Virus record (IMG/VR): IMGVR_UViG_3300012988_000016
Location: 244,896 to 308,895 of that record
Strand: one strand, 5' to 3'
Length of the DNA: 64,000 bases
In this document: in pieces, positions 1,418-59,509 of the stretch
How the letters are laid out: each line of letters begins with the position of its first letter
Position numbering within the stretch: the stretch's first letter is position 1
Position numbers and translations under genes: made by a program
Notes under the pieces: generated by a model
Seen by the model: the letters and a program-made list of their open reading frames with translations, nothing else
The model's database searches: none
Told to the model about the DNA's origin: nothing

Positions 1418-2362
1418 TCAAAAACGGGCTATACCAGCCTCATAGTAGATAGGCTGGAGCTCTGCCCCAAAGGCTCGACGGCCTAGCCGTTTGGCAGCCA
1501 GCGAGCCACTGAACAGGCCGCCAAAGGGTTCCCACACCACATCCCCTGGGTCAGATGAAGCTTCGATCAGGCGACTCATCAGGTCGAGGGGCTTCTGATT
1601 GGGATGCAGCATTTTGGTCCCCACCTTGACCCTCTCATGCCCATTGACTGGACCTCGGTTCCAACAATTGGTCACCCCATGAGGGCAGTTGAACTTAGCT
1701 CTCATCAGTTTCCACTCAGATGGGGTGACGGGATGCTGACCATCAAGTGAGAAATAGGGACGTCCCTCGGGTCTACCATGTTGATTGGCATGATTGACCA
1801 TCAGTTGCATCGCCTGCACTGGGGGAAAGTACCAGAGTCGTCCTTGATTGAGGTACTTTCGAGTAGCCGCATCCTTGACCCCACAAGCCTCGTTGGCTGA
1901 TTTGAGGGTCAGTCCAGTACGCCTCCATTCCCGCAGCAACCACTGTTTGAGCGTGGAACAGGCAACCTTTGGCTCAAACACGTACTGACAACATATCTCG
2001 GTCACGACAGGGAAGCGGCGTATTTTCTTCGTATCTACGTTGCCTGCAATGTGCTGAAGTCCCTTGTTCCACACATTGAGGTTTTGATACCGCCAGCCAT
2101 ATCGCTCCAACAATGGGTGAGCGGACGCCCACCCTATCTCGGTATTCCAGAACCAGAGGGTAGTTTGGGGCAAGGCTAGCTCCGACCAAAGCCTCACATG
2201 AGGCTCATACCAAGGCGGTATGCTGAGATGATCGGAGGTGTCTCCTTCGAAGCCCAATAGACCGTACGCCCCATCTGAGATGATGACGGTTGGCTTGGGC
2301 CAATCTCTGTAGAACTGCAGACTGTCCCCAAGATAAAGGGAGGCTTGCCCCTCAAGCATCAT
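1418..2362 (-). CDS. DNA N6-adenine/N4-cytosine methyltransferase, beta class
   Basis: N-terminal GDSL and VIISDGAYG (DPPY-like motif IV); C-terminal HPNQKP...DPGDVVWEPFGG (motif X/I). Confidence 0.85.
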   Translation of the reverse strand: MMLEGQASLYLGDSLQFYRDWPKPTVIISDGAYGLLGFEGDTSDHLSIPPWYEPHVRLWSELALPQTTLWFWNTEIGWASAHPLLERYGWRYQNLNVWNKGLQHIAGNVDTKKIRRFPVVTEICCQYVFEPKVACSTLKQWLLREWRRTGLTLKSANEACGVKDAATRKYLNQGRLWYFPPVQAMQLMVNHANQHGRPEGRPYFSLDGQHPVTPSEWKLMRAKFNCPHGVTNCWNRGPVNGHERVKVGTKMLHPNQKPLDLMSRLIEASSDPGDVVWEPFGGLFSGSLAAKRLGRRAFGAELQPIYYEAGIARF

Positions 2363-4086: not shown

Positions 4087-4114
4087 TAGAACGGAGCAAG
4101 GAAATGAAAGTTAA
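4087..4114 (-). promoter_or_regulatory. class A promoter-like motif inside an inverted repeat
   Basis: TTAACTT-N12-TCCGTTCTA-N6-ATG(4080); 14/15 inverted repeat 4088-4102/4117-4131. Confidence 0.75.
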
Positions 4115-20173: not shown

Positions 20174-21349
20174 ATGCCAGCTACCGCCCTACTTAAATTT
20201 GCACAAGCTACGGTTGGAACTGGTTTGGCTGGACAGGCCTTTGCAGGGGTGCTGGGCCAACTAGTAACGGTCACCAATAGTGACAACACAGGGGTGGCGA
20301 GTTGGCAGATTGATCTGCTGTACGCCGCTCCTGGCAGTACCACTCCTGCCACCACCGCCTTGGCTTTCAGTGACAATGGTGCGACCCCTACCGTCACCTT
20401 CACGCCCAATGTGAGGCGTAGTTACCGTTTTCAACTCAAGGTGTGGAACGTCCCTAATAGGGTGGGGATTCCTGACATCGATATTCGTGTCTTCAGTGTT
20501 CGGGAATTGAACAACCTGTTCGTCCCTCCAGTCCAGATCTACCCACTACCTCTACCAGATCCTCAATCTAGTCTCGCAGGTGCCAAGCCAAATGAGATGA
20601 ACTTTGGAGGGCAATCAGGAGGTTGGGCAGGCGGTATTGATGCGGACGGTCTGCTGAATGACTTGATTGCCAGACATTTGAATGTAGCAGGCACTCCAGC
20701 TATCGGTAAGTTCATCGGGTACAACGGCACCACCCCCATATGGTCGATCCCTGGAGGGTTGGTGATCACTGGGTTCAACGTATCGGTGGGTTTGCTGGAA
20801 ACAGGTCAGATCATCAACAATCCGTCGTTCTCGGCCAGCTACAATACTGCTCCCGATAGTGTGACGTTGATCAACAACGCAGATGCTGAATCGAAAGATG
20901 TCAGCGGTACTCCCAACAGCTTTTCAAGCAGCCACAGTTTCCAAAAGAACGTCCCCAATCAATCGGTCACCTTCACCATCACTGCCACATTGTCGGGGTC
21001 AGCCAACGCTACCGCCAATGCGTCGATTACATGGGGTCAGAAGAACTTTTGGGGAGTCAGCAGTACGCCGGCCAACACTGAGGCTTTCATTGAAGGTTTG
21101 GCTAGCAATTCGTTGAGTACTTCTCGAAATGCTTCTTTCTCAGTCAACGCAACTGCTGGCACAAAGATCTACTACGCATGTCCCACTCGTTATGGAACTC
21201 CCAGTTTCTCAGTAGGTGGGTTCACAGGTGGATTCATCCAACGAGCTACAGGCATTAGTGTGACAAACGCCCAAGGATTCATCGAGAACTACGATCTCTA
21301 TGAGAGCGTATCAGTAGGTCTCGGACCAACAACTGTGAATGTATCATGA
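20174..21349 (+). CDS. putative virion structural (tail/fibre-associated) protein
   Basis: 391 aa, Thr/Ser/Gly/Asn-rich beta-strand pattern; ATGA-coupled to the giant fibre gene. Confidence 0.65.
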
Positions 21350-24300
21350 GTATCAATCAACCTGGTGACGTAACAGTTATTGCCCCAATCTCTGTACCTG
21401 GGGACGCTAATGCGGCAGTTCGTGCCGCATCTGTATTGGGCGGATTCGTAGCAGTAGTCGATACTACTGAACGAGATTTGATTCCCTCTAGTTCTCGAAA
21501 ACAAGGTATGTTGGTACATACCAATGATGGGACGTTCTATGTATTGGGGGCGGGTCTCACAAATGCCGATTGGGCGATCACCTCAATAGGTGGTGATTCC
21601 AGCTTCATGATCGTGGCTGACAACACAGCTCGCAACGCCATCCCTTCAGGGGCTAGGCGAGAGGGTATGTTGGTCTACAGCAAACTGACCAAAGTCTACT
21701 ACTCCCTAAACAGCGACCTGACGACCTGGACATTCTTTAGTGCCAGTCACTCCCTCGCACTGCAGACCGACTGGTACATCAACGCCTCAACTGGCAATGA
21801 CAACAATGATGGTAAGGTCGGCAACCCATTAGCTACAGTTGAAGAGCTGACTGCACGCCTAAATCCGAATGGGGCGAAGCTCGTTCTGTCACAGAATACC
21901 ACAATCCACATTGCGGCCGGTACCTACAATTTCTTCGACATCAATCTAGATATACCGATTGGTTCAAACTACATCTTCAAGGTCCTGTGTGATTACACGT
22001 CGTCTGCCCCCATCACCCTGAGTGGCGTCACCAACACGGTCGGTAGTGCTACTCCGACTCGTGGAAGTATACAGACAGCTGCTGGAACCTTTGTCGATAA
22101 GGCAAGAATCAGAAGCACCTCGGGTGCGGCGGCTGGAGCAATCACCTACGTGACTGGCCTGACCAGCTCAACCAACGCTTTCGTCAAAACCTGGTTTCAG
22201 GAGACGACCCCCAGCAGCTTCGGGGTCGTCAATGTGGCGAGCGGCACCACAGTGGTGATCGACACCCTACAGGTGACGATCAATCGACTGCGAATCCGAA
22301 CCACCAACAATCCGCTTAGCGGCGTTGTGAGTGTTTGGGACGCTATCCTGCCGGCCGGCGCCGAGTTCGTGAACGTTGCTGCCGGCAGCGCCGCCGTCTA
22401 CCTGTCGCAATGCCAGATCGGCGGTGGGACGTCGACGAACACCAAGCTCGTCGGCAATATGCAGGCCCGGAACAGCCGTCTTGTCGGGGCGAGCATCTCA
22501 CCGTTCGCGGTCTCCTTTCACGGCAACTCATCCCCCGTCTTGCAGGGGTGCGTCATCGAGTGCCCCATAACCTTCCTGACCGCGCTCGTCATCCCCGTCG
22601 GGAGCTGCTTCAACGGAGGGACTGTCACCGGAGGCGACCCGGCCGGCGTGTTTGGTGCCGGGAGCCTAAGCCTCTCTGACACCGAGTGGGTGAACGGCTC
22701 CGGAACCGCCGTGACCCTGAACTACGGGTGCCAGATGTATATCTTGGGCCAGCAGTTCGGCTTCGGGACCCCGTACGCCGTCGGATTCGCCCTGACCGCG
22801 CAGACCTCCGTGGCTGTGGCCTCGTCCACCTACCTAGGGATCCTCGCGACCCAGCAGATCACGATGGTCGGGCACAAGCACACGTACGCCCAGGTTCCGA
22901 TCTCGTACCCGAACTCAGAGTGCATATTCGCCCTCGCCTCCGACCCGCTAGGCATCCCCTACGGGTTCCCGGCACAGACGGCCACGGACTGGTACGTCAA
23001 CGCCTCTACCGGCAACGACTCCAACGATGGTCTGACCGCCGGCACTGCCCTCCGAACAACGGAGAGGTTGGCAGCGATCCTATGTCCTGGCGGCACCACC
23101 CTCACAGTTAGACAGAATACAATCGTTCACTTGGCGGCTGGTACCTATGATGCCTTGGAACTAAGTCTGACGATCCCCGTTGGTTCAAACTACACGTTCG
23201 AGGTGGTGTGTGCCTACACCTCATCGGCCCCCATCACCCTCTCAGGTGTGACCAACACGGTTGGAACTGTAACTCCTGTCCGAGGTAGCATCCAGACCGC
23301 TTCAGGCACGTTCGTCGACAAGGCTCGTATCCGTTCAACTTCAGGTGCCTCCGTTGGAGCCATCACCTACTGTACAGGTCTAACGAGCAGTACTAATGCC
23401 TTCGTCAAGAGCTGGTACCTAGAATCCTCTACATCTCAAGTCAACATTGTGAACGGCACGACCGTAACGGTTGACACCCTACAGGTGACGATCAATCGGG
23501 TCCAGATCCGCACTGTAGGGAATCCACTCAGCGGGGCGATCACCGTTAGAGATGCGATCCTACCGAACGGTATGGAATGCTTATTCTTGGGAGGCAGTTC
23601 TCAATTTGTCTTCTCTCAATGCCAGATCGGCGGGACACTCCCCAATGCCTGCCGAGTATCAGGCAACATACAGATGGCGAATTGCCGTTTCACCGGCACT
23701 CAAGTCTTGGGATTCGCTCAAGGAAGTTCTCCCGTTTTTGCAGGGTGTGTGCTTGAGATCAAAGCACTGATCTATAACAACGTCTCGGAATTTCAAGCCA
23801 ACTGCTTCAATGGAGGTAGTGTTGAATTGGGAGATCCGACTGCCGCTCTTCAAGCGAGTCTCATACTTACCGACAACGAATGGGTGAATGGCTCTGGAAC
23901 GGCTATCGCGGTATTCCCTGGTAGTTATCTGAGAATCACAGGTCAACAGTTCGGCTTCGGCACCAATTACGCGGTCGGCTACAACGTGACGGCAGGTGGT
24001 CATGTCGTCACCAATTCGACCGCTATACTGAGCATACCTGCTACTCAGCAGATCACGATGGCTGGGAAGAATCTCAACTACGTGGATGTGCCCAGGTCTT
24101 ATCCGAATGCGGATTGTGTTTTTGCTCTAACGAATGACCCTAATCCGATTCCTTTCGGAAACACTACCGCTTCTTCGCAAGCTGCCTGGTACATCAACGC
24201 TAGTACGGGCAATGATGCGAATGACGGCAAGACAAGCGGTACCGCTCTCGCTAGCCTCGACGAGCTCCGAAACCGTCTCAACCCCAATGGAGCCTGGTAT

Positions 24301-27300
24301 ATCCCCGCTCAAAGCACGACCGTGTTCATTGCGGCCGGTACCTACAATGCTCTTGAGCTCAGCGTCAGCATCCCCGTTGGCTCAAACTACGTCTTCGATG
24401 TGAAGGGGGACTTTACCTCCAGTAGTCCGATCACCCTGTCTAGTGTGACCAACACGGTTGGATCTGCCACTCCCACCCGAGGTGCCATTCAAACTGCCTC
24501 CGGTACTTTTATCGACAAAGCTCGTGTTAGAAGCACCTCGGGAGGCTCCACAGGAGCAATCAGCTATATCACTGGCCTGACAAGCTCAACTAACGCTTTC
24601 GTCAAGAAGTGGTTCAACGCTACCTCGTTCAGCGAAACGACGGTTGGTCTCAGTTCAACAGTGGTGATGGACACCTTACAGGTGACGATCAATCGTGTCC
24701 AGATCCGAACCAGCGGTCATCCACTTGGTGGGCAGATTCACGTATACGACACCATTTTGCCTTTCGGGGCAGAGATCGTCAATCAGGTAGGGGGCAGTGC
24801 CTCATTGGCACTAGTCGGATGCAAGATTGGCAATTCTGGCTCAGTAACGGCCCGTGTTTCTGGTAACGTTCAGCTGCAAAACTGCCAGATTACAGGCACT
24901 CAACCCGTGTCGATGTTCAGCGGCGTGGTGCCCGTATTTGCTGGATGTGTGATCGAGAATCAAGTGTTGATTTACTCGACAACACAGATCTATGTCGCCA
25001 ACTGTATGAACGGCGGTTCGATCTACGCCTCTGGTACTACAGCTGTTGTGCCGGCCAATCTATCGATCGCTGATTGTGAGTGGGTTAACGGAAATGGATC
25101 CACAACAGCCATCACGGTCGGACCTAGATGTGGGATTCAAATATTTGGTCAGCAATATGGGTTTGGGACCAACTATGCGGTTGGCTTCGCTCTGACGAGT
25201 GGGGCAACCGTCGTCACAGACTCTGTTACAAGTTTGGGTATTCTGGCCACTCAACAGATCACCATGACGGGCCACAATTTGAACTATTCAAATGTGCCTC
25301 GAAGCTACCCTAATGCCGATTGTGCTTTCGTATTGCTGAACGATCCTGCCGCAGTTGCGTTCACCTCAGCTCGTTTTGGCGCCACTTTCTACGTAGATCC
25401 GGCCTACACTGGATTCTCGAACGGCACTCAAGCCAACCCATATCCAAGCATCACCACCGCCATAGCGGCCGCTCCTTCGACTGGTGCGCTGATCTTTATG
25501 GCGCCGTATTCGACCACAGTTGAGAACGTCACGTTCCCAACAACTGGTGTTTGGGAGGTCCGGTCTGAGGCCGAGGTGGGGACTACCATCAACGGCAACA
25601 TCGTGTGTACGGGTGGTGCTGGTGCGGCCGTTACCCTGACGACTCTGATCGTTACTGGTACGGTGAGCGGTGATTTCACGTCGCCAACTGGTGGACGTTC
25701 TCTGATCCTGAACAACACAGATATCAATGGGGCTGTGAGCCTGACGTCCACTGCCGGCAACCGCTGGACCCTTATCCTAAACGGACTAGGCGGTTCACTG
25801 GCGGGTCTTAATGGTGCGTTGAAGTCAACGGCATCGGTCGTTGGCGCCATCCAGGCGTCCAACTACTACATGGTTGGCGCCGTGTCGTTCTCAGCAGCTT
25901 CGCAGCTAAATAACTGCCACCTGACTTCTGGCAGCATTGGTGTGGGTGCGAATGTTTTGATTGAGAACACTGTGTTCGACTCAGCTGTGACGTTCACGGG
26001 AGCAGGGGTTGTGACGATTGATGGTGAGAGCCACGCTTCCGCAAAGGCAGTTGGTGCCATCACACTAGCGGGTGGTGCGACACTTGTGATTCGAAACAGC
26101 GTCTCTCTTGTGGGTATCCAACAAGACGGGGCTCTTGATACGCAAGTACTTGCCTGGAACAACTCGCTCTCTAGATGGAACCCTTCCTCTGTTGTGGGAC
26201 CTGCTGGACCCACAGGACCCGTTGGTCCGACCGGACCTACAGGTCCCACTGGTGCGACTGGCGCCACTGGAGCAGGCACCACAGGTGCAACTGGCCCGAC
26301 GGGACCTGCTGGACCAACTGGACCTGCAGGTGCCACGGGTGCCACAGGAGCTACTGGGGCGACCGGCGCAACGGGGCCAATAGGTCCAACGGGGCCGACA
26401 GGGGCTACAGGTCCCATCGGACCCACAGGTGCAACGGGCCCCATAGGTGCCACAGGGGCAACGGGAGCTACAGGATCGACTGGTGCCACAGGGGCTACTG
26501 GTGCTACTGGACCAACGGGTGCCAGCGGAACTTCAACCGTAGCGGCTACGTCTCCTATCACGGTCAGTACAGTAGGGTCTACCTCAACCATCGGAATCAT
26601 TCATCTTTGGGAGTTCACGATCGGTAACGGCACAACTACATTCGGCGATTTCAATGGTGCGTCTGCCGTTCGAGATGCCGTCACCTATGCCAACACTGTG
26701 GTGGGCCCTCTTGGAACTCCGTGGCAGCTCAGCCTCTTGATGAAAGTCGCTAGCTGCGACATCAACAACGGGGCCGGCAGCACTCTCATCATACCTGCAG
26801 ACTGCACTCTGAAGATCCGAGGATCTGGCTACAACCTAACCAGCAACAATTCGAAGCTGAACATCAATGGTAATGGTGGCTTCGAAGTAATTGGATCACT
26901 GTTCTTGGAGAATGTGTTGCTCCAAGGATCTGGCAGCACCCCATTGGGGTTTGCTATCATGAATTCTACGGCCGCTGTTCTTGGGATGCGAGACTGCTAT
27001 GTGCAGAACAGCTACCTTGATTGGCGTCAATCCAAAGGTCTAAAGACCGTCATTGAACGGACTTCTTTCGAAGCTCAAAGTAGTGACGCTAACCCCCTGA
27101 TCAGCATCAGTGGTGGGAGTGGCGGATATTTGGGGCATCTCGTGTTCTCGGAATGCACTTTCCAAGGAGTTGTTGATCGTACGTTAACTGCTTTCGGCCC
27201 AAGCAGCAACTCCTCATGGGTTGATCTGACTTTCGTACGATGCACTCTACGTTGCGCGGGCAATAGTGTGGCGGTCTCCAACAGCGTAACCAACGCCAAT

Positions 27301-28686
27301 AGCGGAGTGCTGAATGTATTCCCAGGTGGTGGTTCGGTCCCCAGTCGAATCAACGTCAAGTATTTGGATTGCAACGTATGGTCTGACGCTATCGTGGGGG
27401 GTGGTGGAGCTGGTGGGGCGATCCTCATGTATCTGACTAGTTCTGGTACTGGAGGAGCCGCCACCACCATTGATCTGGAAATCAATGGTGGGCAATGGTT
27501 GGCAAGTCCCAGCATCTACAGCGGTATCAACACCCCTTTCTACATTGGACCCAGGACTTGGGCAACTTCCGTAGATAATAACGGCATACGTAGTGTGTTG
27601 ATCAATAACGTTAGGATGGGTTGGGCAGACATCACTGGAGTGTTCAACGGAACACTCCATTATGGGCTTCCTGCATCCGAGATCAGTTACGGTGGGGACT
27701 CTAGGGCGTGGGCTGCCTTCACGGTGTACGCCCATAACACTAGAGTATCAAGGATCACCCTAGGAGGTATGGTCCAAGACTCTGATAGGGCGGACTTCGC
27801 ATTCATCGGTATTGACCGTTGCGAAGTAGAGGATGTACAGGCAGAGGGCGATTGGCAAGCTACCGGCTTGGGTACGTATCCAAAAGGGCGGTTCATCCTA
27901 TACCCAACTGTCAACTACAAGACCAAAAATGTGGCCCGCTATTCAAAGATCGCATACGGTAACTTTGAGGCGGCAGCACAAGCCAGCACCAACGATGGTG
28001 GGGTTTTCTGCGAATGCACCTTTCCGGACTCTGGTGCCCACCCGCAAGGTTGGGTGTTGTCAGATTCTACCGCTATCCTTTCATCCAACTGCCCGATCGG
28101 TAACGGAGTGTTCGTTGGCAGCGACAACAACGTTGTCTGGAGAACAATCGAGCGTTGTACTCTGATAGGTAATCTGAATCTAGCGACAGATGGTGACGGG
28201 GTAGCCTGCTATTCGCTCACCACCACCATAAATTTGGTTGTGAGAGATTGCACCATCAGTTCTTGGATAGCATGCGGCGTTCTTGTATCGACCAACACTA
28301 CGTTCGGTGGTACTTGCGAAATCTCTAACAATCGCATCGACAACTGCAGTCTTCCAGGGATCTACGTTCTGGCAAGTGCTTGGAGCTACATCGGCCCCCG
28401 CATCCTAGGTAACAATGTCGAGCATTGTGACGAAGGGGACTATCCGCACCTACACAGCCAAATTCGTGTCGGGCACCCCTCTGTCGACAATACAGTTGCC
28501 ACTATCGTTGGCAACTCTTGCGACCTCGGTGGTGGGATTGAAGTCCTTTCCTTAGGCTACATGTACGTCGCTGGTATGGATATGTTCAACTACGACACCA
28601 ATGTACCAATCTTAATCTCAACAACACCCTTGAGCGGTACGAGGCTCCGTCAGAACTATGCCGTGTGGAGAAGCGGGCTACACTGA
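21346..28686 (+). CDS. giant tail fibre/adhesin-like protein with three tandem beta-helix-like modules, a collagen tract and a C-terminal beta-helix
   Basis: 2446 aa; WY(I/V)NASTGNDxNDG three times; YVDP...[11 protein letters not shown]; (Gxx)n; C-terminal ISNNRI/ILGNNV/IVGNS repeats. Confidence 0.8.
21763..25360 (+). repeat. three ~1.2-kb intragenic tandem repeats
   Basis: Units start near 21763, 22975 and 24178; shared SSxPITLSxVTNTVG...GTFxDKARxRSTSG...DTLQVTINR. Confidence 0.85.
26197..26532 (+). repeat. collagen-like GPT/GAT triplet repeat
   Basis: About 110 aa of Gly-X-Y with one short interruption. Confidence 0.9.
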
Positions 28687-45239: not shown

Positions 45240-45245
45240 GTAGGC

Positions 45246-45273
45246 TAGAACGGATGCGGGGTTGAGAAGTTAA
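45246..45273 (-). promoter_or_regulatory. class A promoter-like motif
   Basis: TTAACTT-N12-TCCGTTCTA-N6-ATG(45239). Confidence 0.8.
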
Positions 45274-45277
45274 CCCT

Positions 45278-51932: not shown

Positions 51933-52003
51933 AGGGTGGTTCTACACCGAGGGATGGTGATGGGCAGGCTTAAGCGGTTGGCAGTTGGGCCGTATGGTCT
52001 GGC

Positions 52004-52303
52004 ATGCCGAACACCAAGCTGGATGAAGCCGAGCAAGCCATGATGGCCCAGATTTTCCAAACCCGTAAGGAAGTGGGTCAGGATGTCGATAAGGCGCTGG
52101 AGCGGTTACGTCCCCAAAACAAGCTGGACTATTTGGTTACCCAAAAGGTCTTGGCGGGCTATACGGCCTATCCGGATAAGGATGGGAACGATACGCTGTG
52201 CCTCCAGTTCCTCAATGGCGACAGTGTGGTGATCCAGGCTACTCCGATCCAAAACGGTTATTCGGCCGGTCTGTTGGTGGACGGTGAAGAGGTGGTGCCT
52301 TAA
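52004..52303 (+). CDS. hypothetical protein
   Basis: Class A variant TTAAGCG-N12-GCCGTATGG at 34 nt. Confidence 0.7.
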   Translation: MPNTKLDEAEQAMMAQIFQTRKEVGQDVDKALERLRPQNKLDYLVTQKVLAGYTAYPDKDGNDTLCLQFLNGDSVVIQATPIQNGYSAGLLVDGEEVVP

Positions 52304-52332
52304 TCTTTCGAGGCTGGGGCCGTTCTATCAGC

Positions 52333-52566
52333 ATGTTCCTCTTGTTGCTGAAGACTGAAAAGAACGCTGGCATCAACCTGAACTTCGTTGGCATGTATCC
52401 CTCCAAGGAGCGGGCCGAGCGACGGGTGGGGCCGGAGTACAAGGAGTTCCAGGAGGCTGGCTTCGGCCGATACCGCATGCTGGGTGGGATGGCCGACATT
52501 GATGCCAAAGCGGTTTGGGAGACCAGCAGCTGGCAAGGAGCCACCTACTTGTTAGCTTGGTACTGA
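52333..52566 (+). CDS. hypothetical protein
   Basis: Class A TTAATCT-N12-GCCGTTCTA at 33 nt. Confidence 0.7.
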   Translation: MFLLLLKTEKNAGINLNFVGMYPSKERAERRVGPEYKEFQEAGFGRYRMLGGMADIDAKAVWETSSWQGATYLLAWY

Positions 52567-52605
52567 TAGGCCCTTAACTCTTCAGAAGGACAGCCGTTTA
52601 TATCA

Positions 52606-52757
52606 ATGAAGCGGCTGGTTCGGTTCCCCCACGGGGCTAGCCCAGACGGAGAAGGGACGGCTTCGGGGAGATCCGGTCTGGGGACCTTTTGGAGGATGGA
52701 TTCCCCCGTCCCCGTGGGTCAGAAGGGCGGGCTTGCCGTGACGGCTGAGCGCCCTGT
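52606..52757 (-). ncRNA. candidate structured ncRNA between convergent class A motifs
   Basis: Minus motif 52764-52791 has no ATG at +1; four stems; G-U wobble favours the minus strand. Confidence 0.55.
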
Positions 52758-52952
52758 TGATGATAGAACGGCCATGGTGGGGAGAAGTTAAGGCTCACCA
52801 CAGCTTCGGTAATTTTCGAATCCCCCGGTCGATCGCCAACGCTAGGCAGATCACCACATTGTTGACCAGCTCTTCCATCCTAGCATCGAGGCGGGCCAGG
52901 ATCCCTTTGGGCTTTTGAGGCATCGGTCCTCAGCTTAGCCCAAAGGGGCCTA

Positions 52953-53189
52953 TCAAGCAATTGGTTTGGGTTTGGATGACCGCTTACGGTCTTGTCGCAA
53001 GATCTCTCGTTCGATGATTCTGGCCAGAAGGTTTCGTTCCGAACCATTGAGGTTGTGGCACGTACTGGCAGCCAGTACGGCGTATTCGGTCACTGTGATG
53101 GGGGTCGACTTGTTCATGGTAGGATGCTGGGGACAGGGGCTATTGAGTACCAGGATACTCAATAGCCCGCATTTGGGGCAACGATTCAT
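52953..53189 (-). CDS. hypothetical protein
   Basis: CPKC; coupled. Confidence 0.55.
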   Translation of the reverse strand: MNRCPKCGLLSILVLNSPCPQHPTMNKSTPITVTEYAVLAASTCHNLNGSERNLLARIIEREILRQDRKRSSKPKPIA

Positions 53190-53443
53190 GCGGTGATGTA
53201 AGCGTTGGCTGGCAGCCGGCGATCCAATAGTTGGCGGGCCAGGCTGTATTGAGTGCCCTCAGGGGTGAGGGTCCCAAGGCTGCCGTACTGATGGTCTTCA
53301 TTGCCATGTCGGGCTGTGAACTCGCCCGTGCGGCTACAACAGTAGAGGTCCTTGCCATCCAGGCGGCCGAGGAAGCGGCATTCATCGCAGTCGTGCTGGT
53401 ATAGGGGGCGGACCATTCGAGCAACCAACTTGGCGGTCTTCAT
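53186..53443 (-). CDS. conserved phage Cys/His protein
   Basis: HDCDECRFLG...DLYCC...ARHG; class A motif 53453-53480. Confidence 0.7.
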   Translation of the reverse strand: MKTAKLVARMVRPLYQHDCDECRFLGRLDGKDLYCCSRTGEFTARHGNEDHQYGSLGTLTPEGTQYSLARQLLDRRLPANAYITA

Positions 53444-53488
53444 GATGCATGATAGAACGGAAGTCGGTTTTGGAACTTAAGGGACAGG

Positions 53489-53680
53489 ATGACGGTTGAT
53501 CAGATCCTAGCAGGGTGGCGGAACGGGACGCTAAATAGGGCGGAGCTTATTAGCGGTTTGGCTCAGCTGGAGGTGCCCTTGGAAGAGCTCTACTTGCCGG
53601 AAGGCATGGCGGCCGATGTGGAGCGGTTGAGGGCCGCTATCGGGCGGGGAGAGGCCTTCACGGTAGAGGCCAAGGCTTAG
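53489..53680 (+). CDS. hypothetical protein
   Basis: 63-aa ORF filling the gap. Confidence 0.5.
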   Translation: MTVDQILAGWRNGTLNRAELISGLAQLEVPLEELYLPEGMAADVERLRAAIGRGEAFTVEAKA

Positions 53681-53871
53681 TCGTTATTGACGGTCAGCGC
53701 CGAATTGGTGACCCACACTGCTGTTCCGAAATGGGTCACCTTATCGTAATCCGACAGGTCTCGGCCCAACCCTTCCTTGAAGTACTCTTCGAGCATCTGA
53801 GGTTCCAGCTCAGGAGTGGTGACCAACACTTCAGTACCGTCAGAGTAGCTGATCAGGGTGAGGGTTGGCAT
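53677..53871 (-). CDS. hypothetical protein
   Basis: Class B motif 9 nt upstream. Confidence 0.65.
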   Translation of the reverse strand: MPTLTLISYSDGTEVLVTTPELEPQMLEEYFKEGLGRDLSDYDKVTHFGTAVWVTNSALTVNND

Positions 53872-53874
53872 CCC

Positions 53875-54315
53875 TCACTTTACACCGATGACGGTCCCAC
53901 ACCACATGAATTCCTGCATGTTGGGGACCTTTTTGGCCAAGGCTTGGATCAAGCTGACCACACGGCCGTAGGTCATTGCATCTTGTAGATGACGGACACC
54001 GACCGGCTGTTGCTTGATCGTGTAGTAGAGGTCATCGTAGAACACTACTTCGACGACCCTGGTTTGGCCGCTGTAGCACCATACTTGTGCGATCTGGCGG
54101 GGTTCTTGATCGGTTGGCCCGTGGACCCAATCATCCTGATTGAGGATCCCTTCAGCCGTCTCTTGGATCAGTTTGAGTGAGTAGCGTGTGGCTTTTAGCG
54201 GCTCTCTGCTGCCAGGGCAACCGAAACCATCAGCTCCGATGTGGTTGCAGATCTTACCCCCATAGATGTGTTGATCAGTCTTGCAGACGGGACAGGTGAC
54301 TAGGTGGCGTTCCAT
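53875..54315 (-). CDS. hypothetical protein with N-terminal zinc finger
   Basis: CPVC...H...CPGS; start MERHLV. Confidence 0.6.
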   Translation of the reverse strand: MERHLVTCPVCKTDQHIYGGKICNHIGADGFGCPGSREPLKATRYSLKLIQETAEGILNQDDWVHGPTDQEPRQIAQVWCYSGQTRVVEVVFYDDLYYTIKQQPVGVRHLQDAMTYGRVVSLIQALAKKVPNMQEFMWCGTVIGVK

Positions 54316-54317
54316 GT

Positions 54318-54614
54318 TCAGACTCCGTAGACCTTGCAATTGAGGTCTTTCCAGTCTTGACCCACCTGACCGTCCAGCCATTCGTTGTACTGCCGGCGGG
54401 CCACTTGGGCGCACTCCTGGTACAGCTCTGTGGTCATGCCGACGGGGTTGCTCAACAGGTGGATACGGGTCTCACCATCAATGAAGTCGGCCGCGTAGCG
54501 GAGCAGTTGGCGGCCCAGCATCACCTCAACCACACAAGGAGCTCCAGAGCCGTCTGGATAGGGCTTGCCTGAGTTGGTGGAGCATTTGAGGCTGTTAGGG
54601 GTGGGCTGGTTCAT
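54318..54614 (-). CDS. hypothetical protein
   Basis: Class A motif (54621-54648) at 34 nt. Confidence 0.7.
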   Translation of the reverse strand: MNQPTPNSLKCSTNSGKPYPDGSGAPCVVEVMLGRQLLRYAADFIDGETRIHLLSNPVGMTTELYQECAQVARRQYNEWLDGQVGQDWKDLNCKVYGV

Positions 54615-54661
54615 GTCTGATGGAACGGAAGCCAGGTGGGGAAGTTAAGGCTTCCCCACCC

Positions 54662-54895
54662 TCAGGGTTCGTTCTTGCCCAAACAAATCATCAAGCGAGT
54701 TCGGGTCTCGACGGAAGGTTCGGGAAAGGGTCTGGATTCCGATCGAGTGACGATCAGCTCTGGGCAGGCACCTTGCTGGTTACCCTGTACCGGCATTTGG
54801 GCCAACTGTCCGACCAGTAGGGCGATCAAGTCGGTCGCCTCTTGTCGGGTCAGGACCAGGACATCAAAGTTGGTTTGGGGGATTTGTCTGGCCAT
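54662..54895 (-). CDS. hypothetical protein
   Basis: Probable start MARQIP. Confidence 0.5.
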   Translation of the reverse strand: MARQIPQTNFDVLVLTRQEATDLIALLVGQLAQMPVQGNQQGACPELIVTRSESRPFPEPSVETRTRLMICLGKNEP

Positions 54896-55041
54896 GATCA
54901 GGCTTCTCGGGCGCTTCCTTTGGACCATCAGGGAGATCGATGAACCAATTCTTTTCGCAGAGGATTGAGCAGTAGCCGCCAATAGCATCAATGAGGCGGC
55001 CGCAGCCTTGGCAATTCGTTGGTGTGGAATACATGGTGTTC

Positions 55042-55320
55042 CTAGGTACTGTGGAGGAAATCGGTGCAGTCTCTGGCTGTTTGGAGGATTTTTTCTTTGA
55101 GAGCGGCCTCAGCCTTGGTCAACGTACCGGCGCAGAGGGTGAGGAAGGTCTTGTTGATCGTCACTGAGATCTGCCAGAAGTCTCCGCCGTCGGGTGGGGT
55201 CTGGTGTTGCACTTGGATGTGAGGCTTGCCCTGCTGTTCAGCGTTACTGTAGTGTTCCTTGTAGCCAGGCACAGCGTGTAGGGTTTGGCCTAAGACTTGA
55301 ATGGTGGAGGGGGTATCCAT
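55042..55320 (-). CDS. hypothetical protein, TIxxxGRxL family
   Basis: TIQVLGQTL...PHIQV. Confidence 0.65.
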   Translation of the reverse strand: MDTPSTIQVLGQTLHAVPGYKEHYSNAEQQGKPHIQVQHQTPPDGGDFWQISVTINKTFLTLCAGTLTKAEAALKEKILQTARDCTDFLHST

Positions 55321-55322
55321 GG

Positions 55323-55523
55323 TCAGATCTTGGTAGCCTGTTGGCGGCTCCAGTAGCAGACCCTACACCCACAGGGACGGCGAGCCATGAAGGCAGCTTT
55401 GAACTGTTCCTGTACGGCTGGAATGTCGACCACCAGCAGCTTGGCGACCCGCTTGGAGTGACGGGCTAGGATCTGGGCATTCATGCGGAGGGCTTCCGCC
55501 TCGTGAACCTGTAGGGTGATCAT
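55323..55523 (-). CDS. hypothetical protein
   Basis: Class A motif (55530-55557) at 34 nt. Confidence 0.7.
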   Translation of the reverse strand: MITLQVHEAEALRMNAQILARHSKRVAKLLVVDIPAVQEQFKAAFMARRPCGCRVCYWSRQQATKI

Positions 55524-55553
55524 GATTGATGGAACGGAACCTAGGACGGGAAG

Positions 55554-55793
55554 TTAAGCTCCAACCACGCAATAGAGCGTGCCTGGATTGAGGCGTTCGA
55601 GCTCTAGGCGACGAGCATTCGCCTCAGCGGTTTGCTCAGCCGTGAAGGCGTTTAGGCGGTATTCTGCTGAGGTGAATCGGGCTCGACTAACCGATCCATC
55701 CTTGTTGAGGCGTTTGACCAACAGGGTCTTGGTTGAGACCATATCGGTCCAATGTTTGGCCTGTAAGGCTCGGAAGGCGGCGGTGGGTTTCAT
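55554..55793 (-). CDS. hypothetical protein
   Basis: 79-aa ORF behind a structured leader. Confidence 0.65.
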   Translation of the reverse strand: MKPTAAFRALQAKHWTDMVSTKTLLVKRLNKDGSVSRARFTSAEYRLNAFTAEQTAEANARRLELERLNPGTLYCVVGA

Positions 55794-55813
55794 GAGCTTT
55801 GGTTGGAAAAGGG

Positions 55814-55875
55814 ACGCTGACCGTGCCGGCCCAGTCCCTAGGGCCTATCGGGCGTCGGACTCACCGGTCAGCGTT
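55814..55875 (-). ncRNA. structured leader or small RNA
   Basis: Class A motif 55882-55909 predicts +1 at 55875; 10-bp stem ACGCTGACCG/CGGTCAGCGT enclosing a GGCCC/GGGCC hairpin. Confidence 0.5.
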
Positions 55876-55985
55876 ACCTACTAGAACGGATGGGGGAGCG
55901 AGAAGTTAACCCTCTTGATACACCCCTATGTTGGGTTAACGATGGCCCTTGTTACTCAATCGGATAAGTAAACTGCGAGCAAAAA

Positions 55986-56011
55986 TGACCGAAAACGCCT
56001 ATTCTAGGACA
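55986..56011. promoter_or_regulatory. Xer-type-site-like imperfect palindrome
   Basis: TGACCGAAAA-cgccta-TTCTAGGACA (7/10 arms, 6-bp spacer), 43 nt upstream of the recombinase-like gene. Confidence 0.4.
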
Positions 56012-56054
56012 CAGTTTCGATGTATGTAGAATCTACTTGTAAGGCGAGCCATGT

Positions 56055-57059
56055 ATGCATCACGAGAAATTGCTCGAAGCGTGGTTGGCTGGATACGGGG
56101 GAGCCACCCTCATAGCGTACAGACCGGTCGCCCAATCGTTCCTAACTCAGGTCCCTCTTGAGATGCCGGCCATCCAGGCATGGGCCGAATCGCTCACAGG
56201 AAGTCCCTCAACAAGAGCGAGGAAGGTCTCGACCATTGTCAGCCTATTGACCTTCGCCCACAAGCACAGATACGTTGAAGAGAACTTGGGACTGTCTTTG
56301 AACCGTCCCAAGCAGACACCCAAGAAAGTCGTCCCTGTCGACACAAGCCTGATCCAGGATCTGGTTGGCGCTGCCAACGGGGAGCGGGACCGCCTCTTGA
56401 TTCGAGTGCTCTATGAGACCGGCAAATCCCCAGAGGCCGTCACCAAGCTTCGGTTCAAGGACTTGGATCAGGTCTCTGACGGATTGAAAGCTAGCCTGCT
56501 TGAGTTCCAAAAGGACGCCAGCCCTGAGCGGCTTGTGTTCCTATCATTTCGAAACCAAAAGCTTTCTGCCAGAGATGCCAGACGTATGGTACAGCGTGCT
56601 GCAACGGAAGCCGGCTTGGATGAGTTGGGGACGGCCTGGCTTCGCAAGGCCCATCACTGGAAAGACCCGAAACCAGTCCGAGCTTGGAATATTCGACAGG
56701 CTGCCTCGGGGCCGTTCGGAATCATCTACGGTCTGAGGGACCCAAGAACCAACGATCTCTGCTACGTCGGTATGACCCGTCTAAAGCTCCAAGAGCGGCT
56801 GAGGTGTCATCTGTCGAAGGCCAACCTAAAGACCCGTAATCGGGCTTCTGGATGGCTTCGGGGCCTCCTTGCAGACGGGGTTCGCCCTGTGGCTGAAGTG
56901 TTGGCAGTCGCCAAGGATCGGGACGAGCTGCTCTACCTGGAACGCTATCACATCAGCCAAGCCCGCTCGGAGGGACATCCGCTGGTCAACAGTACGCACG
57001 TCTGGAGCCTGAGGAAGATTCAAAAGAGGCTCAGAGGCGACATGAGTCGCTGGGCTTGA
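56055..57059 (+). CDS. degenerate tyrosine recombinase fused to a GIY-YIG-like endonuclease domain
   Basis: Core-binding domain; RDRLLIRVLYETGKS; WLRKAH; then IIYGLRDP...YVGMT...R...H...E. Confidence 0.75.
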   Translation: MHHEKLLEAWLAGYGGATLIAYRPVAQSFLTQVPLEMPAIQAWAESLTGSPSTRARKVSTIVSLLTFAHKHRYVEENLGLSLNRPKQTPKKVVPVDTSLIQDLVGAANGERDRLLIRVLYETGKSPEAVTKLRFKDLDQVSDGLKASLLEFQKDASPERLVFLSFRNQKLSARDARRMVQRAATEAGLDELGTAWLRKAHHWKDPKPVRAWNIRQAASGPFGIIYGLRDPRTNDLCYVGMTRLKLQERLRCHLSKANLKTRNRASGWLRGLLADGVRPVAEVLAVAKDRDELLYLERYHISQARSEGHPLVNSTHVWSLRKIQKRLRGDMSRWA

Positions 57060-57307
57060 CTGGTGGTACCTATCGGCCAGCCGACCAAGACGTTACTTGG
57101 TGTAAGGCCTGCATGGTGAAAATCTTTCTAAGGGTGTTGGGCGAAGACCATTACGCCGAACACATGGTCTCCCGAGTTCCCGGTCTTAACGAGCTGGTGG
57201 CTAGGGATGACGGTTCCTATCTGGTCAAAACCGTCTGTCATCACGTAGACCCTGTGGAGGGTGAAGTGGTGGCGACGGTCCTAATTGAGAGGCCCCAGCG
57301 AACATGA
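57056..57307 (+). CDS. hypothetical protein
   Basis: Coupled ORF. Confidence 0.5.
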   Translation: MTGGTYRPADQDVTWCKACMVKIFLRVLGEDHYAEHMVSRVPGLNELVARDDGSYLVKTVCHHVDPVEGEVVATVLIERPQRT

Positions 57308-57507
57308 CCGTAGGCGAACTCAAGCTCTTCCTCGCCAACTCTGAACTCCCCGATTCGGCAGAGGTGGTGATCCCTGGCCGACACTCCCTCCACGTCTGTC
57401 AGGCGGCTGAGACCACCATCGGGGACATCAACCACTACGGGCAGACCAGCTGGAAGCCCAACGGTGGCGACCCCGCACTGATCCTTCAGGATTGTTCCAC
57501 GGGTTGA
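57304..57507 (+). CDS. small phage protein (MTVxEL type)
   Basis: MTVGELKLFL...LPDSAEVV. Confidence 0.65.
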   Translation: MTVGELKLFLANSELPDSAEVVIPGRHSLHVCQAAETTIGDINHYGQTSWKPNGGDPALILQDCSTG

Positions 57508-57509
57508 GC

Positions 57510-57755
57510 ATGAACTTCTTCGATGAAGCACAGCAAGAAGTAGCGGAAGCCGAGGAACGCCGCTCCAAAGAACGTACGAGGCAGGACATGACCAAGCAAG
57601 AACTGATCAAGCTCTTGAAGGAGCAGCTCAGGATCGAGGTACGGTCGGAGGATCGAAACAACTACCTCAGCGGGCGATGTCAGCGGGTCAGGGTCATGCT
57701 CTTCTTGGGGGATGAGCTGATAGCCGAAGATTCGGCCGATTTGGGGACGGGCTGA
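57510..57755 (+). CDS. hypothetical protein
   Basis: Start MNFFDE. Confidence 0.6.
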   Translation: MNFFDEAQQEVAEAEERRSKERTRQDMTKQELIKLLKEQLRIEVRSEDRNNYLSGRCQRVRVMLFLGDELIAEDSADLGTG

Positions 57756-57757
57756 CG

Positions 57758-58024
57758 ATGAACCGTGAAACCAGAGAAGAGGTGATTCGCCTGTTGTCCG
57801 AGATGACAGGGGAATCGGACTCGATCCAGATTCAGACGATGCGGATCCCCGCCTGTATGGTGCGACCAGGCGATCGGTGGCCCTGCTATCAGAAGCCCAC
57901 ACTTGTCGTAAAGACGGTGCTTAATTCAAACGAAACGATGAGGTTCACGTTCGAGGACGGCCGCACAAGCACCACCTGGGCTAGCGGGACATCGATTGAG
58001 GTGGTGCGGCTGACGGCTATCTAG
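57758..58024 (+). CDS. small beta-barrel protein
   Basis: Similar to 15867-16064. Confidence 0.6.
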   Translation: MNRETREEVIRLLSEMTGESDSIQIQTMRIPACMVRPGDRWPCYQKPTLVVKTVLNSNETMRFTFEDGRTSTTWASGTSIEVVRLTAI

Positions 58025-58097
58025 CTGCTTTCACAGCTCGTTTTGACCCGAACGAGCTGTAGGGCTGGTGTAAGTGAGGGGATGAAAGGAGGTTCTC

Positions 58098-58313
58098 ATG
58101 CAAGAAGGAGACCTCGTTACGTTGAAGACAGCGGACAGCCCCATCATGGTAATCGAAAGTTTCCAGACGGGTGAACGTATTGCAAAGTGTGTATGGTGGA
58201 ATCCTTGGAGTAAGGAGATCCGTCATGAACAAATATACATTGGGGGTCTAAAGGAGTATGTACCTCCAAAACCAGACAATGGTAGGACCCTAAAAGTTGG
58301 AGTAAAGCGTTAA
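58098..58313 (+). CDS. YodC/DUF2158-like protein
   Basis: GDLVTLK...PIMVI...CVWW; AAGGAGG RBS. Confidence 0.75.
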   Translation: MQEGDLVTLKTADSPIMVIESFQTGERIAKCVWWNPWSKEIRHEQIYIGGLKEYVPPKPDNGRTLKVGVKR

Positions 58314-58337
58314 CTCCCGCCCACCCCGGCCGTACTA
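58310..58337 (+). promoter_or_regulatory. class A motif driving the tRNA-like pair
   Basis: TTAACTC-N12-GCCGTACTA; no ATG at +1. Confidence 0.7.
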
Positions 58338-58373
58338 TCAATCAAGGGCAACGGAGTCATGACCCACAGCCCC

Positions 58374-58465
58374 CAGTCGAATAGTTGGCCGGTTGCCAGC
58401 ATCTGATCCAATAACTCAGAATCGGGCGAGACGTCGCCCCAGGGGTTCAACTCCCCCTCGACGGT
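58374..58465 (+). tRNA. atypical tRNA-like gene (8/4 fold, long variable arm, 9-nt anticodon loop; identity undetermined)
   Basis: D-stem GTTGGC/GCCAGC, anticodon stem TCTGA/TCAGA, V-arm GGGCGA/TCGCCC, T-arm GGGG-TTCAACT-CCCC, acceptor 6/8 paired. Confidence 0.6.
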
Positions 58466-58538
58466 TTGCGGCTAGTTCAACAGGAAGAGCGACCCTTGTT
58501 AAAAGGGAGAGAAGTGGGTTCGAGGCCCACGCCGTGAG
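58466..58538 (+). tRNA. atypical tRNA-like gene (anticodon loop GTTAA, Asn-like)
   Basis: Acceptor TTGCGGC/GCCGTGA, TA, D GTTC/GAGC, CCCTT-GTTAA-AAGGG, T GTGGG-TTCGAGG-CCCAC. Confidence 0.7.
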
Positions 58539-58541
58539 CAA

Positions 58542-58745
58542 ATGGCACAACTGACCGAAGAACGGCGAGCCTACTACGAGAAAGCGATCCTCGACTACGA
58601 ACAGTTCCTGGCCCGTCCCCATCCAGAGCACTTCTACAGCAAACCGATCAAGTTCCCCGCCAACTTCGACCCTAAGCGGACCAACCATACCCACATCCTC
58701 GCCCTGATCCAAGACGCCAAAGAACAGCTTGAACCAAATGGCTAA
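58542..58745 (+). CDS. hypothetical protein
   Basis: 67-aa ORF right after the tRNA-like pair. Confidence 0.55.
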   Translation: MAQLTEERRAYYEKAILDYEQFLARPHPEHFYSKPIKFPANFDPKRTNHTHILALIQDAKEQLEPNG

Positions 58746-58950
58746 GTGCCGCTTCTGCCATGCCCCATCTGGCCAGCCTCACGATCGGACCATCCCACAC
58801 GGCGATCCATTCAACCGGAACTTCGTTGGCGATGTGGCCCAATGCGGTTGCAGGTGGGAGCGACAACCAGGCTATGGAGACGTGCTGATCTTATGCCCGA
58901 TCCACAGTGAGATCAATCGAATTGAGTATCTCAATACTCAATCTAGCTAG
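58738..58950 (+). CDS. small Cys/His protein
   Basis: CRFC...CGC...CPIH. Confidence 0.55.
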   Translation: MAKCRFCHAPSGQPHDRTIPHGDPFNRNFVGDVAQCGCRWERQPGYGDVLILCPIHSEINRIEYLNTQSS

Positions 58951-58970
58951 TTTGGTGTAAGATTTGGATC

Positions 58971-59345
58971 ATGAAACGTAGCCCCGCCATCCTCCACATA
59001 GCTCAAGATCTACAGTGGACCCCTGAGGATGTCCTCACGCCCATCGAATCCGCCTACCAACGCCTCAAACTGGCGGGCCTCCACGTTCACCTATGTGACG
59101 ATCGACTGATCGGAGGCTCTCACTACGATGACTCGGATCATCGTATCCGTATGGTGCTGAACGGCTTCATGATCGCTCCCGAGGGAACGGGCTATCGGCT
59201 CAAGAGGGCATCCGACGGTCAGACGGACGGCATAGGGTGCCTGACGCTCGATCAAGCCATCAGGTTGGTGATCGATACGATCCAGCCTCAGCCGAATATT
59301 GAGGCCCCACCCAGACCCCCTCAAAAAGGCCCACAGCTCTATTAA
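58971..59345 (+). CDS. hypothetical protein
   Basis: Class B motif 11 nt upstream. Confidence 0.6.
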   Translation: MKRSPAILHIAQDLQWTPEDVLTPIESAYQRLKLAGLHVHLCDDRLIGGSHYDDSDHRIRMVLNGFMIAPEGTGYRLKRASDGQTDGIGCLTLDQAIRLVIDTIQPQPNIEAPPRPPQKGPQLY

Positions 59346-59437: not shown

Positions 59438-59509
59438 GATACTTTGGTGTACTGGTGCACACACCCGATAAGGGTGGAGAGTTGGGTTCGAATCCCAGCA
59501 AGTATCCCA
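59438..59509 (+). tRNA. atypical tRNA-like gene (anticodon loop GATAA, Ile-like)
   Basis: Acceptor GATACTT/AAGTATC then CCA; D GTGT/GCAC; CACCC-GATAA-GGGTG; T GTTGGG-TTCGAAT-CCCAGC. Confidence 0.75.

Follow-up and report, generated by a model that had tools for sequence, protein, structure and literature searches.

A 64,000-nt stretch of uncultured viral DNA (positions 244,896 to 308,895 of IMG/VR record IMGVR_UViG_3300012988_000016, hereafter the window) encodes, toward its right-hand end, a protein (P0001) in which an inactive, truncated tyrosine recombinase and a GIY-YIG nuclease are joined in one polypeptide. The gene is carried on a short cassette that is present in some and absent from other, closely related phage genomes, with defined boundaries. 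We regard it as somewhat better than an even bet that the cassette works as a free-standing endonuclease of the homing type, with a clamp derived from the recombinase to direct it to its target. The record comes from soil, is 308,895 bp long and is estimated to be 65% complete, the window being its final 64 kb. Because a 475,623-bp contig (ENA k141_787616, L009) encodes the identical protein, the source is a jumbo phage from soil, uncultured and roughly 475 kb in size. A blastn search of window 55000–58000 against GenBank phages returned no match.

Independent JGI, ENA and Logan assemblies yielded at least nine contigs with an identical open reading frame (ORF). An AlphaFold2 (AF2) model of the protein, built from 60 sequences, is confident, with a mean predicted local distance difference test score (pLDDT) of 89.5, and is weak only at linker residues 205–217 and the C-terminal helix. 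Exhaustive structural comparison of the model, scored by Z and root-mean-square deviation (rmsd), was used for fold assignment, and Foldseek agrees with it; together they give a recombinase part, a linker and a nuclease domain. A tblastn search against GenBank phages divides the protein cleanly, with residues 4–200 matching annotated integrases and residues 223–314 matching unannotated or hypothetical ORFs in very large phages. The linker is the most variable stretch across distant homologues, and the C-terminal helix is longer and different in two of them (P0004 and P0008). No significant match was obtained with phmmer against PDB sequences. An initial annotation had described a dead, truncated tyrosine recombinase running in frame into a GIY-YIG nuclease, a description borne out by Pfam, PHROGs, alignment and predicted fold.

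The N-terminal part of the protein has the tyrosine-recombinase fold, core-binding (CB) plus catalytic, but in truncated form. Residues 1–95 match 3nrw_A (Z 11.9, rmsd 1.9) and the CB domain of lambda Int (2oxo, Z 8.6), and residues 90–207 match lambda Int (Z 11.6, rmsd 2.3, with the alignment restricted to lambda Int 177–319) and the C-terminal domain of XerD (Z 10.3). The recombinase-like part also matches XerA (Z 13.9), with Foldseek E values of 5e-6 to 1e-5, and MrpR/YopR, SroF and Ndc10 are among its fold matches. PHROGs integrase families match residues 40–193. The Pfam Phage_integrase profile (PF00589) covers residues 153–198 only (profile positions 88–134), at 25.1 bits and under the cut-off of 27.1.

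Alignment with intact relatives, including a paralogue in the same phage, agrees in every detail with the motif readings first made by inspection: TGKS, AWLRK and an end ahead of the tyrosine. In the Arg-I motif, now TGKS, Ser125 stands in place of Arg, and with the exception of one member this position is Ser, Pro or Cys across the family. The beta-hairpin with the catalytic Lys is deleted in P0001 and shortened in the other family members. HxxRH has become AWLRK, His-II being Ala194, which leaves Arg-II (R197) as the sole catalytic residue kept. Nothing remains of the segment that runs from His/Trp-III to the C-terminal contact helix, the nucleophilic Tyr included; the linker and nuclease occupy its place. 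The core-binding domain retains its conserved ARK helix. Judged by its residues, the recombinase half is catalytically dead and incapable of recombination chemistry.

The C-terminal half matches Pfam GIY-YIG (PF01541) over residues 222–305, at 26.8 bits and over the cut-off of 22.6. Y225, Y237, R248, H252, E296 and N312 do not vary among the eight family members; by motif spacing, we take them to be the equivalents of Y6, Y17, R27, H31, E75 and N90 of I-TevI. The domain superposes on the I-TevI catalytic domain (1ln0) with Z 9.3 and rmsd 2.6 over 87 of 92 residues, and also matches T4 EndoII (Z 7.3) and the UvrC N-terminus (Z 6.1). Because all GIY-YIG catalytic residues are invariant in the eight members, the nuclease is probably active.

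The nearest GIY-YIG relatives are proteins of 200–290 residues in which an N-terminal GIY-YIG domain is followed by NUMOD3 and helix-turn-helix (HTH) modules, the layout of I-TevI and I-BmoI (P0013, P0016, P0020 and P0041). A Pfam scan of P0001 found neither NUMOD nor HTH domains, and its nuclease is C-terminal, so its own layout is a different one. Three proteins of the same subfamily (P0011, P0144 and P0108) have small N-terminal regions before a C-terminal GIY-YIG domain, and to the eye these regions are possibly ribbon-helix-helix or HTH domains. Because relatives pair GIY-YIG with differing partner regions, the subfamily appears to exchange DNA-binding modules, the recombinase clamp seemingly being one more such module. 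Homing endonucleases in general swap DNA-binding modules.

The fusion is not confined to this phage. An exhaustive, profile-free search over 1.84 billion representatives recovered the full-length architecture in six diverged metagenomic clusters at 50% identity (P0002, P0004 and P0006–P0009), 36–66% identical to P0001; below these came only intact recombinases (matching residues 4–200) and plain GIY-YIG proteins (residues 220–315). The single fused ORF is common to seven diverged homologues. A scan of IMG/VR confirmed no further relatives, a word-indexed search with the N-terminal region alone returned the three closest members and nothing more, and the ESM Atlas yielded ordinary integrase clusters only, the fused architecture not being found there.

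A quick maximum-likelihood tree places the recombinase-like regions of all eight fusion proteins in a single clade (SH-aLRT 100), apart from 23 intact recombinases. Selection was assessed between the window and a relative (L015) from the proportions of nonsynonymous (pN) and synonymous (pS) differences, given in place of a dN/dS estimate because synonymous sites are saturated. pN was 0.26 and pS 0.74 in the recombinase-like part, and 0.15 and 0.67 in the GIY-YIG domain. These values indicate purifying selection on both halves, with the nuclease domain better conserved than the recombinase-like part. Because diverged relatives keep the architecture, form one clade and show purifying selection, the comparison of sequences argues that the fusion arose once and long ago, and that both its halves are functional.

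These results also dispose of a recent chance fusion, which the initial annotation had offered as an alternative. The short, sub-threshold Pfam integrase match might suggest a frameshift or misassembly, or a recombinase pseudogene in decay that runs into a neighbouring nuclease gene. We give such an artefact or accident next to no credence: it is refuted by the occurrence of the same ORF on independent contigs, by the diverged homologues with the same single ORF, by the confidence of the model, and by the single origin of the recombinase-like part and the purifying selection acting on it.

Presence and absence of the gene were seen when Logan contigs of four soil runs were compared over window 53500–59000. 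The gene is present in three of the four, and the remaining run (X4, from a different study) carries a gene-less contig (record 14, 2,719 bp). This contig is identical to the window over 55505–56008, skips 56009–57067, with 31 other letters instead, and matches 57068–57108 poorly; 57109–57757 is replaced by 218 other letters, and 57758–59000 is identical but for one base. Apart from the window's own record, a scan of JGI metagenomes for the exact 21-mer ending at 56008 recovered a single contig, L019 of a sister sample, which has the same 56008/56009 junction and flanks 0.6–1.5% different from the window. The flanks of the two gene-less contigs are 98.5–100% identical to the window.

On a close reading of the junctions, the gene-less allele has about 22 unrelated nucleotides at the cassette position, and homology resumes at ACTGGT, overlapping the stop codon. 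Because the breakpoints fall at 56009 and 57057, the cassette consists of the proximal promoter and the ORF and nothing else. Its left edge adjoins a conserved 20-nt element. On its right, near-identity with the gene-less alleles returns only at 57758. Nuclease genes have been reported at boundaries of exchange between phages (Barth et al., PMC10055350), and a one-sided diverged tract of about 700 nt is what co-conversion or exchange at such a gene would be expected to leave (PMC10055350).

The 475,623-bp contig ends at window 55868 (L009 position 1), 140 nt (k − 1) to the left of 56008. A k141 de Bruijn unitig would stop here, k − 1 = 140 nt short of the breakpoint, and the end would mark an assembly-graph branch, with both alleles in that sample. 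A genome terminus or hairpin telomere at this end was ruled out, the end lying exactly k − 1 from the indel breakpoint. A second mosaic spot among otherwise near-identical strains lies at window 53680–54242; there, runs X2, X3 and X4 have 84 other letters in place of 53681–53940, and X2 and X3 have 229 letters in place of 54007–54241.

Upstream of the gene, the initial annotation had placed a Xer-like 10-6-10 palindrome at 55986–56011. This did not hold: 7 of 10 positions pair, and the window contains 313 equally good sites, a density of 1.3 per 261 nt, which is the chance level. No Xer/dif-type site (inverted arms of about 11 bp, spacer of 6–8 bp) better than chance was found upstream, and the intergenic DNA folds no better than its shuffles (z = −0.9), with no stable structure. 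Though the pairing itself is chance, the bases of the palindrome do hold a real conserved element of 20 nt, CCGAAAACGCCTATTCTAGG. The upstream regions of seven family members are otherwise unalignable and share three blocks, namely CCGAAAAC(G), TTTCGA and a TATAAG-like block. An exact CCGAAAAC core stands on the coding strand ahead of the start codon in four loci, at 66 nt in the window, 67 nt in L015 and 69 nt in both L010 and L013; L012, L014 and L011 have copies with one mismatch or on the reverse strand. Because the intergenic DNA of L010 and L013 is otherwise unrelated, the exact 8-mer at a fixed offset in both is, on this alignment, far beyond chance.

The 20-nt version occurs just once in the window, against 0.04 occurrences expected. 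CCGAAAAC has five copies in the 309-kb record, one only in a fusion-gene context, and none was found in that record near the intact recombinase gene described below. CCGAAAACGCCTATTCTAGG is retained in the gene-less allele, where it ends exactly at the left breakpoint. A promoter-like motif that recurs across the phage is present in L015 (5 copies in 4 kb) and not in L010 or L013. Because the latter two still keep CCGAAAAC without it, the CCGAAAAC element appears tied to the gene or its target and not to general phage transcription signals, and is a candidate target half-site or operator.

The other two shared blocks correspond, in the window, to the hexamers TTTCGA and TGTAAG, whose position is conserved in L015, L010 and L013. 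Read by eye, TTTCGA-N17-TGTAAG looks like a sigma70-type promoter; a promoter consensus scan did not call the pair. The start codon lies 11 nt past TGTAAG, with no Shine-Dalgarno sequence between. A ACTTGGTGTAAGGC box, at window 57094–57115 and, with L019 read as its reverse complement, some 70–100 nt past the junction there, stands 6–8 nt ahead of the next ATG and resembles a ACTTGTAAGGC box preceding the fusion gene. The two boxes may represent promoters of a second class, whose genes start almost without a leader, or a short repeat that played a part in the indel.

The fusion gene is the first plus-strand gene following a long minus-strand run; the flip in gene orientation noted at the outset is thus plain in the ORF layout. 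The same minus-to-plus switch occurs at the fusion gene in every one of the five loci for which flanking sequence was available (the window, L010, L013, L015 and the contig encoding P0003). There is essentially no synteny, and the flanks are made up of small, fast-evolving ORFs that are not homologous from one locus to the next. GC skew is clearly positive (+0.12) over window 52001–56000, about 4 kb ahead of the orientation flip and where ORFs are still on the minus strand, and the cumulative GC-skew minimum lies at about 50–52 kb of the window.

An intact tyrosine recombinase of 279 residues (P0154) is encoded outside the window (G000:C1:243464–244303, minus strand; equivalent to L002:1129–1968, minus strand), about 0.6–1.4 kb before the window start and about 57 kb upstream of the fusion gene. 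It gives a full Pfam match, has the R..HxxR..H..Y set intact, and is of Xer/Cre size with no arm-binding domain. P0154 is 38% identical to fusion residues 4–188 and, by this resemblance, a paralogue of the N-terminal half of the fusion. In the relative L010, an intact recombinase gene encoding 290 residues diverges from the fusion gene at a distance of 125 bp, with the conserved element between them.

Mutually matching ORFs lie a few kb from the fusion gene in three relatives (L013:15672–16145, minus strand; L010:10860–11534, plus strand; L012:45–515, plus strand), the one in L013 having T5orf172/MUG113 Pfam matches. This domain is often found in homing-type phage genes, and regions around the fusion gene may collect selfish nuclease genes.

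Table. Features at the fusion locus (window coordinates) and the basis for each.
Feature	Positions	Strand	Basis
Leftward variant of the phage-wide motif, TTAAC..TCCGTTCTA	55881–55913	−	in divergent intergenic region
Conserved upstream element CCGAAAACGCCTATTCTAGG, 20 nt	55989–56008	+	upstream alignments, motif counts
Present/absent cassette, 1049 nt, proximal promoter and ORF	56009–57057	+	X4 and L019 junctions
Promoter-like hexamers TTTCGA (56015–56020) and TGTAAG (56038–56043), 17 nt apart	56015–56043	+	alignments by eye
Fusion ORF, P0001	56055–57059	+	334 aa plus stop
Core-binding (SAM-like) domain, residues 1–95	56055–56339	+	AF2 pLDDT >90, fold matches
Inactivated N-terminal two thirds of recombinase catalytic domain, residues 90–207	56322–56675	+	alignment, fold
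Flexible linker, residues 205–220	56667–56714	+	pLDDT <50 for 205–217
GIY-YIG nuclease domain, residues 221–316	56715–57002	+	Pfam, invariant columns, fold
C-terminal helix, residues 317–334	57003–57056	+	low confidence in model
Diverged/replaced tract right of cassette, ~700 nt	57058–57757	+	81% and 68% identity or missing

We favour the homing-type reading because of the homing-type origin of the nuclease, its intact active site and its modular subfamily, and because the cassette is optional, 1.05 kb in size with a putative promoter of its own, has a sharp breakpoint at a conserved element and is flanked by a one-sided diverged tract. In the protein, an I-TevI-type GIY-YIG domain with an intact active site is carried on a flexible linker of about 16 residues by a presumed DNA-binding module, itself a disabled, C-terminally truncated tyrosine recombinase of the same lineage as the small Xer/Cre-like recombinase of the phage. 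The C-shaped, recombinase-derived clamp probably recognises a specific duplex sequence. The nuclease, sitting at the former place of the Tyr-bearing helices, would hydrolyse DNA nearby, and on structural grounds the 16-residue tether would put its hydrolytic site near the former recombinase attack point. Irreversible cutting would thereby replace reversible transesterification.

At the level of the genome, the cassette, comprising the gene and its own proximal promoter, is an optional occupant of the divergent intergenic region at the strand switch. During mixed infection the enzyme would cut the cassette-less allele beside the CCGAAAAC element, and repair from the cassette-bearing genome would then copy in the cassette plus adjacent DNA. 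Cleavage, DNA binding by the clamp, the identity of the target, mobility and a gain of the gene as opposed to its loss are all inferred parts of this scheme. The suggestion in the initial annotation that a recombinase clamp now targets a nuclease fits these data, and among the roles it listed (homing, cutting of host dif-like sites, concatemer processing) homing is favoured by the I-TevI-type relatives and the sharp-edged gene-less allele.

Several observations weigh against homing. Only two kinds of allele were seen, and the gene-less one could thus have arisen by deletion instead of being an empty homing site. A search of RNA sequencing runs turned up none that contains the stretch. The family is very small, with six clusters and no related loci in the IMG/VR scan, and the nuclease is at the C-terminus, an order unlike that of characterised GIY-YIG homing endonucleases. 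The conserved CCGAAAAC element could simply be part of a promoter or operator. The strand-switch position shared between loci would likewise suit a resident gene that is inherited vertically and serves the phage.

That last point leads to an alternative that we consider unlikely, while giving it real weight: a resident early phage gene whose nuclease acts against non-self DNA, for host-chromosome degradation or competitor exclusion, the gene-less contigs being deletions. The clamp would then aim the nuclease at a site in the host or a competitor, for example a dif- or lox-like one, which we likewise judge unlikely. T4 EndoII, a GIY-YIG nuclease that degrades the host chromosome, is a structural match (Z 7.3), but the closest relatives of the nuclease are homing-type and not EndoII-type, and the clamp is nearest to phage recombinases, not to host XerC/D. 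A place as first gene of a rightward unit at a strand switch conserved in five loci, a putative sigma70-like promoter of its own and long maintenance of the fusion under purifying selection would all suit a resident gene, whereas the cassette is dispensable in near-identical phages. This alternative keeps its weight because the strand-switch position fits vertical inheritance of a useful early nuclease and a fixed target equally well.

The intact paralogue raises the prospect that the fusion is its accessory partner, the dead copy binding the same or a neighbouring site and either adding a hydrolytic cut, for a mixed recombinase/nuclease reaction akin to the help that a GIY-YIG nuclease gives Tsy transposition, or blocking or steering recombination. 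The divergent gene pair of L010, 125 bp apart with the element between, and the pairing of tyrosine recombinases with a GIY-YIG nuclease in Tsy elements (PMC10293859) would accord with such a role, and a functional link between fusion and paralogue is suggested by this neighbourhood and precedent only. We nevertheless find it distinctly improbable, as the two genes are about 57 kb apart in this phage, no CCGAAAAC lies near the intact gene, the fusion has no C-terminal helices for recombinase-recombinase contacts, and the optional cassette contains the fusion gene only. A related proposal, to which we assign a similarly small chance, is that the truncation does more than lend a DNA-binding domain: the clamp would still read the recombination site of the paralogue or a Holliday-junction-like substrate and bring the GIY-YIG domain to where the Tyr once lay. 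The protein would then be a 'hydrolytic recombinase' that turns a site-specific recombination site into a programmed break.

Finally, the protein might be mainly a DNA-binding regulator, an autorepressor or switch at divergent promoters in the manner of MrpR/YopR, with a nuclease that is secondary or inactive. The element lies within the promoter region of the fusion gene itself, MrpR/YopR and SroF are among the fold matches, and I-TevI autorepresses through an operator at its own promoter. We hold this to be very improbable: the six GIY-YIG catalytic positions are all invariant, and the nuclease domain is the better conserved half, which argues for a working nuclease. Regulation may, moreover, coexist with homing instead of replacing it.

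The phage genome around the cassette is crowded with small ORFs of no assigned function, and few window ORFs have a Pfam match. Among those that could be characterised are an N6/N4 DNA methylase ORF (1418–2362, minus strand), two AAA ATPase ORFs, both matching Pfam AAA PF00004 (13784–14833 and 30426–31442, both minus strand), and an ORF of 2,446 residues (21346–28686, plus strand) with collagen triple-helix repeats at about residues 1671–1728, probably a fibre or other structural protein. tRNA genes were called at 58466–58539, for tRNA-Leu(TAA), and at 59439–59509, for a 71-nt tRNA-Tyr with the unusual anticodon ATA.

The phage-wide promoter-like motif, (G/C)CTTAAC(T)T followed after about 13 nt by TCCGTTCTA, has at least 22 copies in the record, on both strands, and nearly every copy ends 5–7 nt ahead of an ATG start. 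Window copies are at 4095(−), 9015(−), 37001(−), 45959(−), 46632(−), 48691(−), 52319(+), 52772(−), 54629(−), 55538(−), 62329(+) and 63844(+), with a variant at 45245–45277. By its spacing to the start codons the motif implies that genes are leaderless or nearly so, and it is possibly read by a sigma factor or RNA polymerase specific to the phage.

The architecture is rare, with six clusters among 1.84 billion representatives, and neither a tyrosine-recombinase clamp as a homing-endonuclease module nor the fused architecture was found in the literature searched. If active, the protein would mark a natural route from a conservative recombinase scaffold to a hydrolytic site-specific nuclease, and would join to I-TevI-type nuclease parts a reading module of about 200 residues, potentially covering 11–13 bp per monomer, that is of interest for building chimeric nucleases. 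It would also provide a concrete case of a nuclease gene at a genetic-exchange boundary in uncultured soil jumbo phages. Were it merely a resident early nuclease, it would still be a clean example of a dead enzyme fold reused for targeting. Were the 'hydrolytic recombinase' proposal true, jumbo phages would harbour either a mobile, site-specific cassette of a new class or a recombinase/nuclease system of two enzymes.

Compared with known systems, P0001 shares with I-TevI, I-BmoI and T4 Seg an I-TevI-type catalytic domain (Z 9.3) with the full Y-Y-R-H-E-N set, and with free-standing GIY-YIG homing endonucleases a flexible linker between the nuclease and a separate DNA-binding module. Its gene, like phage homing genes, is small and intergenic, has a putative promoter of its own, is present or absent between close genomes and has diverged flanks. 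Unlike in I-TevI, I-BmoI and Seg, the nuclease is C-terminal, so that the order is reversed, the module is a truncated tyrosine recombinase of about 205 residues and not NUMOD, IENR1 or HTH, and cutting and homing are here presumed. With small Xer/Cre-type recombinases the protein shares the fold over residues 1–207, the ARK helix, Arg-II and 38% identity to the paralogue. It differs from them in having neither Arg-I, the Lys hairpin nor His-II, and in that His/Trp, Tyr and the contact helices are swapped for a nuclease. Tyrosine recombinases are not known to assemble away from DNA.

Recombinase folds that outlive the loss of their active site have precedents. In yeast Ndc10 the recombinase fold is reused for DNA recognition. 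MrpR/YopR of SPbeta is a dead recombinase fold reused as a DNA binder (PMC10516654), and TnsF of Tn6022-like transposons is another that selects the target for a mobile element (PMC10293859). P0001 resembles these proteins in keeping the fold, presumably for DNA recognition; unlike them, as they recruit or repress and have no nuclease, it is fused to a nuclease and truncated before the Tyr. The Tsy transposons combine a tyrosine recombinase and a TnsF-like protein with a separate GIY-YIG nuclease that boosts transposition (PMC10293859). They share with the present system the joint occurrence of a tyrosine-recombinase-family protein and a GIY-YIG nuclease, to which L010 adds a neighbouring intact recombinase. 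In Tsy, however, the genes are separate and both recombinases are active, whereas here a dead recombinase part and a nuclease form one fused protein, on a cassette that in this phage has no adjacent recombinase.

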